Source: Guillardia theta CCMP2712
Lineage: Eukaryota; Protista; Cryptophyta
Reading direction: 5' to 3'
DNA length: 64,000 nucleotides
Assembly: GCF_000315625.1 (NCBI RefSeq)
Contig: NW_005434661.1
Span: 108,725 to 172,724 of the forward strand
A program made the translations under genes and the position numbers. The notes under the pieces were generated by a model that was given only the letters and a program-made list of their open reading frames with translations, was not told the DNA's origin and did not search any database. This document shows, piece after piece, positions 22,152 through 33,530 of this stretch (positions are counted from its first letter, which is position 1; each line of letters starts with the position of its first letter).

Positions 22152-22402
22152 TGTCTGGGTACAGCCTTGCTCATGGAGGTCCGACCGAGAGAGAGATCGA
22201 GCATAGACAAGCAGCAGTCCAACATGTCAGGGTCCAGAGGAGAAGGGGAGCGGGAGCTACAAGGATGCATGTCGGGTCCTGGCCCCATCGGAACTTGCGC
22301 AGGACATGACCGGACCGGGACACCCGGCCCGGCCGGGGCCCGGGCCGTAGTCACCAGCTTCCTTTACTCCGAGTCCTCGCAGTGACCGTACTGGGGAATG
22401 GA

Positions 22403-22447
22403 GTCCTGCGCGCTGTTAAGTGAAGGTATCAGTTAAGTTTGGGGGAC
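22403..22447. repeat. 45-nt dispersed repeat, copy 2
   Basis: Matches 6361-6405 at 44/45 positions. Confidence 0.9.
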
Positions 22448-23069
22448 AGCAGTTGGCAGGATTAGGTTTGGTTCTCGCTGTCTTTTCTCTTCTCGCCGTT
22501 TGGCCCGGCAGTGCGATCGGACAGTGTCAGGGTTACTGAAGCCTCCTCGACTGAGAGTCTCCTACTGAAGTTGTCCTCGTACTGATCTTTAACTTAACTT
22601 TGAGTAAAGATTTTTAACCGTCTAACTTTGAGTAAAGAAGTCACACTGTAGTAAAATCATCGTAAACTTCCGTGACTCTCACAGGCTGCGCTGGTCACTG
22701 TCACCGCTTGGGGGGACTCGAACAACGGACGGGGGCTTGTCACGGACTCTGACTCACAACTTAAAAGCACACACCGCGCTCGCCACTGATGAGCCTCCGA
22801 CACATTAAAAAGAAACAATTATTACCCAGAACTTCTCACCGACTGCAAGAACTTATCCGGGTTCTTACAGGGGAGCAGCCACGATAGTACCTTCTTGGCT
22901 CACCCACCCCGAAGAGTAGGGTTCTTACACCAGCGTAATTATTAGAACTTAGAACTTATCCGGGCGTAATTATTAGTCATCATGTGCCTCCGAAACTATT
23001 CGGGGAGCAGCCACGATCAATCTCCTTGGCTGACCCATCCCGAAGAGTATCATGTTCAGATCTTGAGGG

Positions 23070-23078
23070 TATAAAAAG
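23070..23078 (+). promoter_or_regulatory. TATA box upstream of duplicated membrane gene (copy A); also at ~27787-27793 in copy B
   Basis: ggTATAAAAggg ~60 nt before the ATG in both copies although surrounding DNA has diverged. Confidence 0.6.
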
Positions 23079-23131
23079 GGGTTATATGAAGTTTACAGTA
23101 GAGTGTCGAAGTAAACATTCGTCGTAAAGCG

Positions 23132-24870
23132 ATGAGCCGCGCGATGGCGTGCGAGGGCGAGGAAGCCATGGAGCTGACGTGCGTCAGCGAGTCAAGTGAG
23201 CGAGAATCTGAAGCCCGAGGGACTCACAACAAACCTCTGGAGTTCTGCTACTTCTACACGCACTCGAAGGGCGACTTCCTCCAAAGCTGCATCCGGGAGA
23301 GGATAGTCTACAAGTACAAGCCCAGCGCCATCTTCTTCTCGCCTGAGCCTCTGTCTGCCGTGCTGGCCTGGCCTCGAGCACAGTTAGCCCTGGCGCTGTT
23401 GAGTGCAACATGGTTGGTCTTCATCACACTGAAGCTGCAGTCAATCCAATCTGCAGGGTATTTCTCGCTGGTGAACGAGGAAGCGAGGGTGCGAGAGTTC
23501 TCGACGGCAGCTTTTGGACGGGACCGAGAGCTTGCCTGCTCGTGGGAGCTTGTCCTCGAAATGTTCATATCCTTCCTCCTGGGTGTCTCCGGGCTTCTGA
23601 TCAGCATCCTTGCGCATACGAGTCGCATCGAGTTAGCTAAGCTGGTAAGTACATGGGTTAATTGACAGTCACCAAGAGACTGAGAGGATCGCAGTTGATG
23701 CTCGTCACCGGCTTTGTCGGCATCACGACCAATTTCATCATCTTCGTCAAGCTGACGTTACAAGGCTCTGCCAGGAGTGGGCTGAGGACGCCGAGCTGGT
23801 TCTTTTTAGTGAACGTGATGACGGTAAGTTGTGTGCGAGTGCTGGGAGCGACGCTGAGGTCACCCTGCAGGACGTGCTTTTGTTTCCTATGCCGCTGGCA
23901 GTGAACGAGAGCTGGGTGGTGGAGCTAGTGCTGCTGGACAGCATAGTCCACCTGAGTGTGGAGTTTGCGGACGGACAGCTGCCATACTTGTACATGCTGA
24001 TGGCAACCGTTGCCCTCAGCTTTCTGCTGGCGCGCGAGCGTATGAGATGGCGAGTGCTGCGGGAGATGCGTCAGGAACAAGAAGGAGCGTGGGAGGAAGA
24101 ATGGATGAAGATGCGAGGCAGCTGGGCTCTCCGGTCTCTGACGAAGGCTCTTCGAGTTGGGCCCGACTATCGGTCGTTTGCGTTCGGGTCTTTTGGTCCG
24201 ATCGTCATAGTGAGCTCAGAACGTCGTCAGGATGAGGAGGCAGAGCTGGATTACATCCCGGCTTGCAACCCCAAGACCAACACGAAGGTGCAGACGTCAC
24301 CTGACAGCCTCGACCAGCTCTACGCTCAGGCGATCCTCATCGAGCCTGTCTTCCTCCTCAAGGTCCAGGCCCTCGCCTTCGCGTCCGACGGCTACTTCCC
24401 TCTTGACAGCTGCCAGGACAGCTCCCCCGAGTACGTGCGATGGCGAGACGCGGTGAGGGACGACACGCTAGCAGACAGGGTGAGGTGGGCAGCCATCAAG
24501 AGCGCCTCTAGAGCCATCGAGAAGCTTGTGCGCGCATACAACTTTGTCAGAGCTCACGGATGTGGTGCGGCAGACGATTGTGTTTGCGGGGCTGGAGGAG
24601 CTGCTGCTGGGGGTGAAGGCGGTGCTGGACGACCCGGAGCTGGAGGTGGTGAGGATCAAGAACAGGCTCGATCCAGGCTTCGACTCGACGCTGTCGGGGG
24701 GGTACCGGGACGTGGCGATCAACGTACGAGTAGTGAGTGACGAGACGAGGAGGAGAGGGGTAGAGGGACACGTGTGCGAGCTTCAGCTGATCCTCCAAGA
24801 CTTCCATGCCCTCAAGTCCATGGACGGACACAAGAGGTACGTGCAGTTCCGCAACATCCGGTGTGAGTGA
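23132..24870 (+). pseudogene. Half-length, frameshifted copy of the membrane RelA/SpoT-like gene (6TM + one chimeric synthetase-like domain)
   Basis: Near-identical to 27852 onward but lacks ~2 kb of the middle; frame break at ~24545 (AAC TTT G TCA GAG) splits it into ORFs 23829-24740 and 24526-24870. Confidence 0.75.
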
Positions 24871-25216
24871 CGTCGAGGGCGGAGCCTCTCGCCGGGCAGT
24901 GAGAGAGGAGGGGCTTAAAGTCGAGCTTAGTAAACAAGACTGAGAGGCATCAGCTGTACACTTACCTCTCCTTTCCGAGGCCTGCCCTCGGAGCCTGAGT
25001 CGCCGCAATCCGTACTCAGTCGGACGTCATCCTACCGCGTCCGGAGCTATCCGAATCACCTGCGCCTCATCCCCCGCAGCATTCCCTGAGCGTTGGTTGG
25101 CGTATCGAACTGCTGATGCAAAGTGCTGCTCGTCAGAGGAGATGGTGAATTCATGGTGTCCTCCTCCTCTGAGCCTCAGCCTTGCTGGGACACTGACCCG
25201 CATGATATACGAGCAT

Positions 25217-27851: not shown

Positions 27852-30800
27852 ATGAGCCGCGCGATGGCGTGCGAGGGCGAGGAAGCCATGGAGCTGACGT
27901 GCGTCAGCGTGGCAAGTGAGCGAGAGGCTGAAGCCCGAGGGAGTCACAACAAACCTCTGGAGTTCTGCTACTTCTACACGCACTCGAAGGGCGACTTCCT
28001 CCAAAGCTGCATCCGGGAGAGGATAGTCTACAAGTACAAGCCCAGCGCCATCTTCTTCTCGCCTGAGCCTCTGTCTGCCGTGCTGGCCTGGCCTCGAGCA
28101 CAGTTAGCCCTGGCGCTGTTGAGTGCAACATGGTTGGTCTTCATCACTCTGAAGCTGCAGTCAATCCAATCTGCAGGGTATTTCTCGCTGGTGAACGAGG
28201 AAGCGAGGGTGCGAGAGTTCTCGACGGCAGCTTTTGGACGGGACCGAGAGCTTGCCTGCTCGTGGGAGCTTGTCCTCGAAATGTTCATATCCTTCCTCCT
28301 GGGTGTCTCCGGGCTTCTGATCAGCATCCTTGCGCATACGAGTCGCATCGAGTTAGCTAAGCTGGTAAGTACATGGGTTAATTGACAGTCACCAAGAGAC
28401 TGAGAGGATCGCAGTTGATGCTCGTCACCGGCTTTGTCGGCATCACGACCAATTTCATCATCTTCGTCAAGCTGACGTTACAAGGCTCTGCCAGGAGTGG
28501 GCTGAGGACGCCGAGCTGGTTCTTTTTAGTGAACGTGATGACGGTAAGTTGTGTGCGAGTGCTGGGAGCGACGCTGAGGTCACCCTGCAGGACGTGCTTT
28601 TGTTTCCTATGCCGCTGGCAGTGAACGAGAGCTGGGTGGTGGAGCTAGTGCTGCTGGACAGCATAGTCCACCTGAGTGTGGAGTTTGCGGACGGACAGCT
28701 GCCATACTTGTACATGCTGATGGCAACCGTTGCCCTCAGCTTTCTGCTGGCGCGCGAGCGTATGAGACGGCGAGTGCTGCGGGAGATGCGTCAGGAACAA
28801 GAAGGAGCGTGGGAGGAAGAATGGATGAAGATGCGAGGCAGCTGGGCTCTCCGGTCTCTGACGAAGGCTCTTCGAGTTGGGCCCGACTATCGGTCGTTTG
28901 CGTTCGGGTCTTTTGGTCCGATCGTCATAGTGAGCTCAGAACGTCGTCAGGATGAGGAGGCAGAGCTGGATTACATCCCGGCTTGCAACCCCAAGACCAA
29001 CACGAAGGTGCAGACGTCACCTGACAGCCTCGACCAGCTCTACGCTCAGGCGATCCTCATCGAGCCTGTCTTCCTCCTCAAGGTCCAGGCCCTCGCCTTC
29101 GCGTCCGACGGCTACTTCCCTCTTGACAGCTGCCAGGACAGCTCCCTCGAGTACGTGCGATGGCGAGACGCGGTGAGGGACGAGACGCTGGCAGACAGGG
29201 TGAGGTGGGCAGCCATCAAGAGCGCCTCTAGAGCCATCGAGAAAGTCCTTCTGCTCTGTGACGGGCGGGTGTCAGAGCTCACGGATGTGGTGCGGCAGAC
29301 GATTGTGTTTGCGGGGCTGGAGGAGCTGCTGCTGGGGGTGAAGGCGGTGCTGGACGACCCGGAGCTGGAGGTGGTGAGGATCAAGAACAGGCTCGATCCA
29401 GGCTTCGACTCGACGCTGTCGGGGGGGTACCGGGACGTGGCGATCAACGTACGAGTAGTGAGTGACGAGACGAGGAGGAGAGGGGTAGAGGGGCACGTGT
29501 GCGAGCTAAGGCTTGCGGTCATGTCGTTACATCGATTATCATGCTCAGTCATGTCTTCCAAATTTCAGAGCGTCAAACAGATTCTTCGGTTCCGTCATGG
29601 CTGGAAGATGTCGATGCAGCTGTATGACTACCGATGGTTTCTTGATTGGCTTCATCCGGCGGGAGTGGAGGACACCTCACAGATCCTCAACGACATCTCC
29701 TCCACCCTGCTGGCATGCAAAGCCAACGAAGAGAAGCCTGAGATCACAGTGGCGACATTCAAGAGCTTGTATGCCGGAGACTTGCTGGACACCCAGCTGG
29801 AAAAGACGGCCCATGGGGTCTTAGGAGTCTCGACCTCGACCATCATGTTCTCCTCCACGCCGCTCACTAGCGCCATGCACAAGCGATTTTTCCAGCTTGT
29901 GACGCTTGTGGTAGGAATCTCCTTTGGGTACTTTGTGTTCACCGGAGAGAATGCGGCTCAAGTGTCCAGGAACGGAATGATGCAGTCTGATGCTTATCGC
30001 CTGCGCATCAAGACCGTTCGCAACGCTTCCGCAGCAGCTCGCCCTGAGGTCTACAACAGCTCCTTTGCCCTGGTCAGAGACTGCTGCTCTCGCTTCTACC
30101 CCTCGTCAGTGTCGGTCCGAGACTCCTTCCTCTACTTCAGCTTCAATGAGTCGTTCCCAGCTAACGGCTGGCAGCTGGAGATTGCATCTGATCGAAGTCT
30201 GGCGCAGTTTGACCCCCACGAGCTGACGCTCCAGCGATGGGACGAGACGTCAGACGCAGGCAACGCCTCGTGGGAAGAGATCAGCTCCTTCTCCTGCAGA
30301 GCGCACCCAGAGCTGAAGCTCTGCAATGCTGTTGGGGAGCTGGCGAGTGACACCACGATCCGGTTCGAGCTGAGGGAGCCATGGAGAAAGATCATGCGCT
30401 ACGTGAATCATGTGGAGCAAAGCGCCGTATGCTTTCTGGCTGTGTTCTTTGCGCTTATCCGCAACTCGTTTCTTGCCAAGACCTTTGTCTCTTCTCCTTT
30501 CCATATCGCTGGGGTGCTGGAGCTGGTGACCTGCATGCCTGTGAACTTTCTTGACCCGGAGAGTGCTCACGACTTCATCTTCGGTATCGCAGACCTCGGC
30601 TACGGGCTGATCCTTCAGTTCAAAGAGCGGTACACGCTCAGCGCTCTCCCGGTCTACTGCTTGGTCACCACCTTGGGCGACATTGCCATCGGAATGGACT
30701 GGTTCCAAAGCCCCCAACCCTTCCACGTGGACTACATCCCTTTCAGCACGTACGTCCTACTTGTAGCATGGAGCTACTTCTGGTTTTCGAGGAAGATGCT

Positions 30801-31656
30801 GCTCCGCAAGGCCCTGAAAGCCATCGAAGGAGACAAGATCAAGTACGACGAGCAGTGGAAACTGCTGGTCTCGCAGCAAGAGAGCCTGGAGCGGCTGACA
30901 GAGCTTGCAAGCAAGTGCAAGCAGGTCCCTTCAAGTCCCGCCAAACAGAAAGGAACTCAAGATGTCCTCTTCGACCCCGACAACCCTTCCATCTACGATC
31001 GACTCCTTCTCCAGCTCCACCCCAACGATCAACAACCCGGCATGTCAGGAGCCAGGACGATCAAGCGCGAGCATCGAGTGAGGTCCCTCGACCAGCTCTA
31101 CGCTCAGGCGATCCTCATCGAGCCTGTCTTCCTCCTCAAGGTCCAGGCCCTCGCCTTCGCGTCCGACGGCTACTTCCCTCTTGACAGCCTCTGCCAGGAC
31201 AGCTCCCCCGAGTACGTGCGATGGCGAGACGCGGTGAGGGACGACACGCTGGCAGACAGGGTGAGGTGGGCAGCCATCAAGAGCGCCTCTAGAGCCATCG
31301 AGAAGCTTGTGCGCGCATACAACTTTGAGGTCTTCCGTCTCACGGACGTGGTGCGGCAGACGATTGTGTTTGCGGGGCTGGAGGAGCTGCTGCTGGGGGT
31401 GAAGGCGGTGCTGGACGACCCGGAGCTGGAGGTGGTGAGGATCAAGAACAGGCTCGATCCAGGCTTCGACTCGACGCTGTCGGGGGGGTACCGGGACGTG
31501 GCGATCAACGTACGAGTAGTGAGTGACGAGACGAGGAGGAGAGGGGTAGAGGGGCACGTGTGCGAGCTTCAGCTGATCCTCCAAGACTTCCATGCCCTCA
31601 AGTCCATGGACGGACACAAGAGGTACGTGCAGTTCCGCAACATCCGGTGTGAGTGA
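27852..31656 (+). CDS. ~1235-aa polytopic membrane protein with two RelA/SpoT synthetase-like nucleotidyltransferase domains and a discoidin-like ectodomain
   Basis: Exons 27852-28364, 28415-28543, 28591-31656 join in frame over 50- and 47-nt GT-AG introns. Each catalytic-like domain: IKSASRAIEK, LTDVVRQTIVF, RIKNR, GGYRDV, HVCEL; second ends ELQL...GHKRY. Confidence 0.85.
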
Positions 31657-32258
31657 CGTCGAGGGCGGAGCCTCTCGCCGGGCAGTGAGAGAGGAGGGGC
31701 TTAAAGTCGAGCTTAGTAAACAAGACTGAGAGGCATCAGCTGTACACTGACCTCTCAGGCTCCGGGCCTTTCCTCCTGCCGCAGTGCCCTCGGAGCCTGA
31801 GTCCGGCGCCGCAATCCGGATAGGATGACGTCCAACGATTCGAGCGATAATGATAGCCCAAGTTGAACCTCCTATAGCGACAGAGTCAAACATAAGTTTA
31901 AATTAGTCACGCCGTTATAAGGTCGGATAATCAGGAGACAGGCTCTGTATACCGAGGAGGCGGCTTCAACCGACCCTGACACTGCTATCACTGATGGCAT
32001 CATGTCATGCCCCCTGCGGCGCGCCCGGGGCTCCGGGAGTTCGGCCGGCGGCCAGCCTGGCACTGCCGCAGGCGGCCGGCCGGACTCCGGGACCCGGCGT
32101 CCGGCGGGCCCGACCCGGTGGCGGTGACCGGGCCCGTACCGGGCCGTCACTCAGTAATTTTTTAAAACCAACTTGCCAGGGCTCATTGCATTCTGATTTG
32201 ACTACCGGTACATTAGATTTCAAATCAGAGGGTACTGTTCAGGGTTCCGGAAATAGTC

Positions 32259-33530
32259 ATGGCAGCCGGATGGGGATCGGCGATAGCCGCCGTGGCGATG
32301 GTGGCGATGGTGGGAGGGATGGTGGCTGTCTTGACGTCTCCGTCTCCTCTCGCAGCCACCAGCCAACTACTCAGCACAAGTGAGCAGGAGAGTAGCCGAA
32401 AGCTGGTAGGAGGCGATCGGAGGACTGTAGGATGGGTCAAAGTCGATCCACCAAAGATTCATATTTCTCCGCTCCATGTGGATGCGTCCATTGACGATGG
32501 CAGCCTCGACTCCTTGTACAGAGAGGTAAGGCCCGTTGAGCTCGCGATGCCTTGTATCTACTTCTTGCTGATCACTTCTCATCCTCCGTTTCCAGTCGGA
32601 GAACGAGCTGCTATCGGACTTGAGGGAAAAACTCCAGGAGAAAGTGGAGAAAGAGGTACAACGGCAGGTCAAGGAGAGAGTTCCTGCCATGCAAGCACAA
32701 CTTGAGAAGGAGGCGAGAAAGAAGCAGCTTGTTTCTGATATCACCAGCGAGATGGAGCAAGTGAACGCGGGATTCAATGCTATCGAGGACCTAAAGGTAG
32801 GAGTTGAAGCGCACAAGGCCTTGTTCTTGATATGCCAGCAGGCGAAACAAGCGGAGTCAGCGAAAGCACTGGAAGGGCTGGAGGAAGACATGAATTCAGA
32901 CGAGACCAAGACTCTCTTCCAACAGGCAATGGCTCTTCTCAATGCCGGGAATGCTACCAACTGCTCCAGCGGAGCAGATGCTAATTGCACAAACGGTACC
33001 AGCTCCGAGTTGCAAGAAGAAGTCACTTCGCAGGAGAAGGCTATCCTGAAGACAAACTTAGCCTTGAAGCAGCACCAGATGGCTTTGCACAAGCTTGTCA
33101 TGGAAAGCAAAAGTCTTGCTAAGCGAAGGTCAGCTTTGGTCCCCAAGAGCCCCTTGCTGCAAGTCGAGAAGGATCTGAAAGCAAAGAAGCTAAAAAGCAA
33201 GCAGCTAGCAAACGCTTGGATGAAAGACAAGCGGGAGATCCAGCAGGAGACGATGAGATTGAACGCTCTGCTCAGAAACAAGGAGAGCAAGTCAGCGAAG
33301 AAGGTCACTCCGGAGTCATTCGGAGAGAAGCAGGCCTTCATGAAGTCGTTTGCCAAAGGCTTTGGGTTCGTCTCCAAGCAGGTGAGGGCTCGAGACCGTG
33401 ATAGCTTGCATGTGACTACTGTAGCAGAGAAAGTTGACGCAGCAGGAGCAGCGCTTGAAACAAATCATGCAGGACTGCGTAGAGGGGAAGGCTGACTGCT
33501 TGAAGTATGCTTTGAAGATGAAGAAGTAAA
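32259..33530 (+). CDS. Signal-anchored coiled-coil protein of unknown function (3 exons)
   Basis: Hydrophobic N-terminus AIAAVAMVAMVGGMVAVL; long K/E/Q/A helical ORF 32620-33381; N-glycosylation sequons NATNCSS/NCTNGTS; last exon RKLTQQEQRLKQIMQDCVEGKADCLKYALKMKK*. Confidence 0.7.

Follow-up and report, generated by a model that had tools for sequence, protein, structure and literature searches.

Alarmone synthetases of the RelA/SpoT homologue (RSH) superfamily are known as soluble stress enzymes of bacteria and plastids, as bacterial toxins, and as effector domains of some fungal NOD-like receptors (NLRs). Tas1 and FaRel toxins drain ATP into (p)ppApp, and CapRel and FaRel2 pyrophosphorylate the 3' ends of tRNA. 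In the structures of RelQ and RelP, the Syn1 helix holds the ATP phosphates, and Syn4 and Syn5 serve catalysis and acceptor binding. The locus analyzed here is a three-exon gene at positions 27852-31656 (+) of a 64,000-nt stretch of Guillardia theta CCMP2712 nuclear DNA (contig NW_005434661.1, positions 108,725 to 172,724; the window hereafter), and its joined exons encode 1235 amino acids (aa). The overall order of the protein was 6TM-C1-6TM-C2 (TM, transmembrane helix), with a beta-sandwich in an outer loop of the second membrane part, and both soluble domains, C1 and C2, had the RelA/SpoT synthetase fold while falling outside the Pfam family boundary. Both the fold and its chemistry are familiar, unlike the architecture, the lineage and the differentiation of C1 and C2. 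In full-text literature searches, no paper was found that describes eukaryotic RSH proteins of a membrane-anchored or receptor type, in agreement with a preliminary description, made from the letters of the DNA, which had suggested a signaling system not known to have been described.

Gene structure and fold of the soluble domains

Feature coordinates are collected in Table 1. Exon 3 was a single uninterrupted open frame of 1021 codons, and paralogue P0152 was aligned continuously by phmmer over both exon junctions. The exons, introns and open last exon bore out the spliced frame of about 1235 aa, and its order of helices, C1, helices and C2, given in the preliminary description. The N-terminus was acidic, not hydrophobic, and no signal peptide or plastid presequence was detectable there; nor was an HD hydrolase domain detectable in the 1235-aa protein (no HD_4 match in Pfam), so that the absence of presequence and hydrolase, noted at the outset, stood.

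Table 1. Features of the gene and of related sequences. Positions are those of the window unless a locus is named.
Feature	Position	Strand	Description
Exon 1	27852-28364	+	aa 1-171; open reading frame (ORF) started by ATG; hydrophilic N-terminus, then TM1-TM2 of M1
Intron 1	28365-28414	+	50 nt, GTAAGT...CAG; donor GTAAGT at 28365; frame restored on removal
Exon 2	28415-28543	+	aa 172-214; TM3 and start of TM4 of M1
Intron 2	28544-28590	+	47 nt, GTAAGT...CAG
Exon 3	28591-31656	+	aa 215-1235 and stop; remainder of M1, then C1, M2, C2
M1	28101-28752	+	aa 84-268, across both introns; six hydrophobic helices, then Arg-rich juxtamembrane helix with conserved W
C1	29023-29547	+	aa 359-533; degenerate RelA/SpoT-fold domain; hidden Markov model match of 202.5 bits, profile positions 1-173 of 188
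M2	29884-30822	+	aa 646-958; TM1, outer loop, TM2-TM6
Beta-sandwich in first loop of M2	29980-30369	+	aa 678-807; four N-x-S/T sequons, conserved Cys/Trp
Juxtamembrane helices after TM6 of M2	30826-30918	+	IKYDEQW...; helices 361-391 of model
C2	31081-31653	+	aa 1045-1235; complete small-alarmone-synthetase-like domain, ends the protein
Conversion tract	29028-29507 (C1) vs 31086-31568 (C2)	+	DNA 98-100% identical
Upstream tandem partial gene copy	23132-24870 (flanks 22208-24970)	+	98% identical
Downstream ORFs	32259-33495	+	Lys/Glu-rich coiled-coil-like protein, unrelated
Deposited model GUITHDRAFT_134859	27852-33495		1243 aa, "hypothetical protein", P0151
Weak C-profile matches after tandem ANF_receptor domains	L019:2134-2586; L018:2093-2533 (G000 C262, C133)	-	

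C2 alone was searched against 1.84 billion representative proteins and matched 1927 clusters at E ≤ 0.001, 169 of them at E ≤ 1e-30. In many of the matched proteins the domain was the very last part of the chain, and about 30 had two copies of it. An alignment of 51 sequences (A2) had invariant K67, K75, D89, R92, D113, R138, E162 and H179, and its profile reached two solved proteins, Tas1 (E = 2.7e-4) and Bacillus subtilis YwaC/RelP (E = 1.8e-3). In the alignment with YwaC, the K, K/R, D..R, GYR, E-x-Q and H..Y of C2 fell on the corresponding YwaC motifs. The residues of Syn1 to Syn5 were accordingly all found in C2 (basic Syn1 helix, Mg-binding Asp, G-loop Tyr, Glu-x-Gln, and His..Tyr), at K1111, R1115, K1119, R1122, Y1124, D1133, R1136, G1180-Y-R1182, E1206, Q1208, H1223 and Y1226. 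The motif series listed earlier (K..R...K, D..R, GYR, E.Q, H..Y) therefore held for C2; C1 departed from it, with E-L-R and S..F in place of the last two.

The AlphaFold2 model of A2 had a predicted local distance difference test (pLDDT) score of 94.2, and the best 50 Foldseek matches against the PDB were all RSH synthetases. Identity to characterized RSH enzymes was 12-22%. The fold was the nucleotidyltransferase fold of the small alarmone synthetase (SAS)/Rel synthetase type. Matching to PF04607 (gathering score = 27 bits), which had been proposed as a check, failed for the protein. The best relative scored 21.8 bits, and 19 of the 51 relatives gave sub-threshold matches that covered nearly the whole model; Pfam was also silent on ten single-domain relatives of greater length and on four Guillardia loci with a single domain. 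Because the profile matches, the sub-threshold PF04607 matches, AlphaFold2 and Foldseek agreed, the assignment of a RelA/SpoT (small alarmone synthetase) fold to both domains, as first described, was firm. Bacterial and archaeal genomes scanned with C2 peptide patterns, a method that detects close relatives only, yielded no relative.

Asymmetry of C1 and C2, and integrity of the locus

C1 and C2 were compared across 24 two-domain proteins (redundancy ≤50%), with residues numbered as in A2. Of the 25 motif positions compared, every one was fully or almost fully conserved in C2. C1 kept K67, K75, D89, R92 and E162 and varied at R78, Y80, R124, Y137, Q164 (Arg in 10 of the 24) and G178. In the C1 of this gene, K424, K432, D446, R449, GYR 493-495 and E519 were kept, L435 and C437 replaced the Arg and Tyr of Syn1, and R521 replaced Gln (E-L-R, not E-x-Q). 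Its tail had Ser and Phe where C2 has His1223 and Tyr1226, and the G-H..Y tail was absent, so that R78, Y80, Q164, H179 and Y182 of the family numbering were lost. Given these losses and the roles of the motifs in RelQ and RelP, C1 is probably inactive or altered. The two synthetase domains first described were thus alike in fold and not equivalent in their motifs, in this gene and family-wide. Pairing of C1 with C2 was neither favored nor disfavored by a complex prediction.

The degeneracy of C1 bears on the idea that the protein is a pseudoenzyme, in which the domains bind nucleotide, act as scaffolds or pyrophosphorylate a non-nucleotide target, and the main job, for example transport, is done by the helical bundle. 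The sequence is remote from characterized RSH enzymes, without a Pfam match and at the low identities given above, and the TM bundle is without an informative relative. Against this, the motif residues of C2 were all kept in the 24 distant two-domain proteins and in the 51 aligned relatives, a retention that is hard to explain without catalysis, and the pseudoenzyme was considered rather improbable.

At the DNA level, the near-identity of C1 and C2 was interrupted by a C1-specific patch of 34 nt (29244-29277) and came to an abrupt end at the Glu-Leu codons, beyond which the C1-type tail begins. Five paralogues showed the same pattern of core, patch and tail. In C2 numbering, the core (residues 87-163) was 96-100% identical between C1 and C2 of one protein and 67% identical at the same position between proteins. 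For the patch (76-86), identity was 9-32% within a protein and 62-66% between proteins; for the tail (164-191), it was 9-32% within a protein, and between proteins 62-66% for the C2 tail and 41% for the C1 tail. As the cores were alike within proteins and unlike between them, gene conversion homogenizes the cores gene by gene, a case of concerted evolution in which the boundaries are conserved. Patch and tail of the C1 type survived every time, which is good evidence that the difference between C1 and C2 is functional. The paralogues amount to a natural experiment: conversion makes C1 and C2 alike, but in every paralogue two short segments escape it, and these hold the residues to mutate first.

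A repeat of this kind could also have misled the assembly, and the M1-C1-M2-C2 order might be an artefact, either a mis-assembly through a near-identical repeat or two adjacent genes read as one. The window contained three copies of the 480-bp core of the C domain, 98-100% identical to one another, no read-derived contig bridged the interior of the C1 repeat (29057-29463), and both domains were omitted from the deposited gene model. However, the stretch from C1 to M2 was without a stop codon. Contigs from two runs spanned 29463-31115 (C1 tail, M2 and C2 head) with zero differences, and also connected M1 to the C1 head without joints; these runs were taken to be DNA because their contigs included introns. 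The same order in one open frame was found at 28 or more further loci, where C1 and C2 have diverged and the assembly is unambiguous, and in a transcriptome protein of Hanusia, and the C1-specific patch and tail resembled the C1 of paralogues, not C2. An artefact was considered very improbable.

The deposited model matched the three-exon translation over aa 5-327, treated C1 (aa 354-540 of the three-exon model) and C2 as introns, and fused the gene to the downstream coiled-coil gene (~32259-33495), part of which was wrongly joined to it. Masking of a domain of about 90 copies as a repeat may be behind the omission, and other family members may be mis-modeled in the same way. Since the deposited model omits both domains, probably as repeat-like sequence, proteome surveys will miss family members.

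The upstream partial copy contained M1 with the same two introns, one C domain that was a mosaic of C1 and C2, a C2-type tail, a stop and the 3' flank. It looks like a duplicate of the gene reduced by 2061 bp through recombination between C1 and C2. Relative to both C1 and C2 it had a 5-nt gap, between 24549 and 24550, which shifted the frame, and the copy is therefore a probable pseudogene, or the gap a sequencing error.

Membrane parts, family and proposed function

By hydropathy, aa 84-268 contained six hydrophobic segments, and more were present in aa 646-958. The AlphaFold2 model of aa 600-1235, built with 24 homologous units (pLDDT 81.8, predicted template modeling score 0.72), had a TM helix, a beta-sandwich of about 130 residues and five TM helices with very short loops, followed after TM6 by two juxtamembrane helices, about 55 disordered residues and C2. 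The helix count of M1 rests on hydropathy and on homology to M2. Comparison of M1 and M2 by hhalign (probability 97.5%, E = 4.9e-12, 201 columns) included a conserved Glu where TM5 begins and a Y/F-D-x-x-W helix after TM6. M1 and M2 are thus homologous, and the protein is therefore a six-helix bundle plus synthetase-fold domain, twice over, by tandem duplication, as the M1-C1-M2-C2 order had suggested; the large loop was either lost from M1 or never there. In a further alignment (A4), juxtamembrane Y367 was invariant and W371 nearly so. The W-containing helix previously placed at the end of each linker was present, but directly after TM6 and about 60-85 aa ahead of SLDQLY rather than adjoining it.

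Arg/Lys-rich segments followed TM6 in both halves. The N-terminus, C1 and C2 are predicted to be cytosolic and the sandwich to lie outside or in a lumen, because there are six helices per half, positive residues on the presumed inside, and sequons and conserved Cys in the big loop; the beta-sandwich loop is probably extracytosolic. For the TM bundle, searches returned only generic matches and no specific relative. A look-alike of M2 in the ESM Atlas (one eukaryotic cluster at 0.85) is a lead only.

The Guillardia genome contained 90 matches to C2. At least 29 pairs were formed by these, each within a single open frame of 1000-1500 codons and with a spacing of about 2.1 kb, and the better match was always 3'. 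Relatives were found in six cryptophyte genera (Guillardia, Hanusia phi, Hemiselmis, Chroomonas, Rhodomonas and the non-photosynthetic Cryptomonas paramecium), the Hanusia phi relative being a two-domain transcriptome protein of 1253 aa, and one small paralogue is labeled "RelA/SpoT domain-containing protein" in UniRef. Two canonical long RSH genes were also present in Guillardia (G000:C47:131263-132737 and G000:C24:131220-132315), with HD_4 and RelA_SpoT over the Pfam cut-offs. HD_4 was found in the genome in two domains, both in these genes, and no stand-alone hydrolase was found.

None of 21 ANF_receptor (Venus-flytrap receptor) matches coincided with the 90 C-domain matches. At two of three ANF_receptor loci, a same-strand frame further downstream weakly matched the C profile (a small search; E = 2.3e-5 and 3.7e-4), which fits, with weak support, a branch of single-pass receptors that is more divergent and has an output domain of this kind.

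We propose a stimulus-regulated, membrane-bound pyrophosphokinase, in which C2 would make a ppGpp- or ppApp-like nucleotide in the cytosol with C1 as degenerate partner, and give this reading about an even chance. The family arose when a unit made up of six-helix bundle, juxtamembrane helix and RelA/SpoT-fold domain was duplicated in tandem. C2, which keeps every residue that holds ATP-Mg and the acceptor purine nucleotide in RelP and RelQ, would be the working pyrophosphokinase, and C1, from which the Arg and Tyr of Syn1, the E-x-Q Gln and the H..Y tail have been lost, would be a regulatory or structural partner. When the membrane or outer part senses a stimulus, such as a ligand, this would alter C2 activity via the conserved Y/W juxtamembrane helix, and with it the cytosolic level of the 3'-pyrophosphorylated purine nucleotide. 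A wider reading, of a receptor-driven messenger system of alarmone type in the cryptophyte cytosol, with dozens of surface or endomembrane receptors, C2 as output, C1 as allosteric element, and convergence with the design of animal adenylyl cyclases, was held to be possible rather than probable.

Several observations weigh against the proposed pyrophosphokinase. No Pfam or NCBIfam model was over threshold on the 1235-aa protein. RNA on this gene amounted to a single read, in the portion examined of one raw RNA run. With HD_4 confined to the long RSH genes, no obvious dedicated hydrolase for a cytosolic messenger was seen. The solved protein nearest by sequence, Tas1, is a toxin, and the family expands, recombines and leaves broken copies, which suits immune-type receptors as well as sensory ones.

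Some of these points also favor a role as defense or cell-death effector, in which the membrane part would sense infection or damage and the RelA/SpoT-fold domain act as a toxin on its own cell. Identity to Tas1 in the structural alignment was 21-22%, Tas1 shares the D-x-x-R form of Syn2 in the profile alignment, the structural matches included CapRel and FaRel2, and seven of the 51 relatives weakly matched the PADLOC candidate PDC-S33 (best E = 4.5e-4). The lack of a stand-alone hydrolase and the large, recombining, partly broken paralogue family point the same way, as does the use of a RelA_SpoT domain as NLR effector in fungi (PMC4986451). The gene itself is a spliced eukaryotic one, with no adjacent antitoxin or immunity gene and no secretion context; its neighbors are the broken paralogue upstream and the coiled-coil gene downstream. 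Such an effector was judged unlikely, though it is the main rival to the pyrophosphokinase.

If the pyrophosphokinase is active, the joining of a polytopic membrane sensor to an alarmone-synthetase fold would constitute a new class of receptor enzyme, and the family would supply (p)ppGpp- or (p)ppApp-like nucleotides outside plastids. According to a 2022 review (PMC10107265), MESH1 and ppGpp are present in animals and an obvious synthetase is not; the making of such nucleotides in the eukaryotic cytosol is an open question on which the family bears.

Comparison with known systems

The bacterial small alarmone synthetases RelQ/SAS1 and RelP/SAS2 (PDB 5ded, 6fgk, 6ewz) were 13-18% identical to the Guillardia domain, which scores below the Pfam threshold. 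Unlike them, the Guillardia domain forms part of a membrane protein of twelve helices that contains two copies of it, one of them degenerate, and its Syn2 motif reads D-x-x-R where RelQ and RelP have D-x-x-G-x-R. Tas1 (PDB 6ox6) is a (p)ppApp-synthesizing toxin that Pseudomonas aeruginosa secretes by a type VI system and whose immunity gene lies next to it, whereas the Guillardia protein is a resident eukaryotic membrane protein for which no immunity partner was seen.

Metazoan transmembrane adenylyl cyclases (class III) share the 6TM-C1-6TM-C2 order through internal tandem duplication, a similar asymmetry of C1 and C2, in that only one of the two sites is canonical and the other is degenerate, and a helical segment after each TM6. 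The likeness to these enzymes drawn in the preliminary description held for domain order, as an analogy of layout only: there is no homology, no cyclase catalytic domain was found (no Pfam match to PF00211; RSH fold instead), and the TM bundle gave generic matches. An RSH active site is also contained in a single domain, whereas that of adenylyl cyclases is formed between C1 and C2.

Plastid RSH1-4 and CRSH belong to the same superfamily and are likewise nuclear-encoded in photosynthetic eukaryotes. They are soluble, long, carry an HD hydrolase domain and pass the Pfam threshold, whereas the Guillardia protein has twelve predicted TM helices and neither the HD hydrolase nor the plastid presequence of plant and algal enzymes; it belongs to a clade of its own that has diverged strongly. 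The nearest eukaryotic precedent outside plastids is provided by fungal NLRs whose N-terminal effector domain is RelA_SpoT (Dyrka et al., 2014, PMC4986451), and they also use a non-plastid synthetase fold as the output of a receptor-like protein. In these NLRs, however, the receptor part is a soluble NACHT/NB-ARC protein and the effector domain is recognized by Pfam, whereas the Guillardia protein has two copies of the domain and a bundle of membrane helices as its putative sensor.

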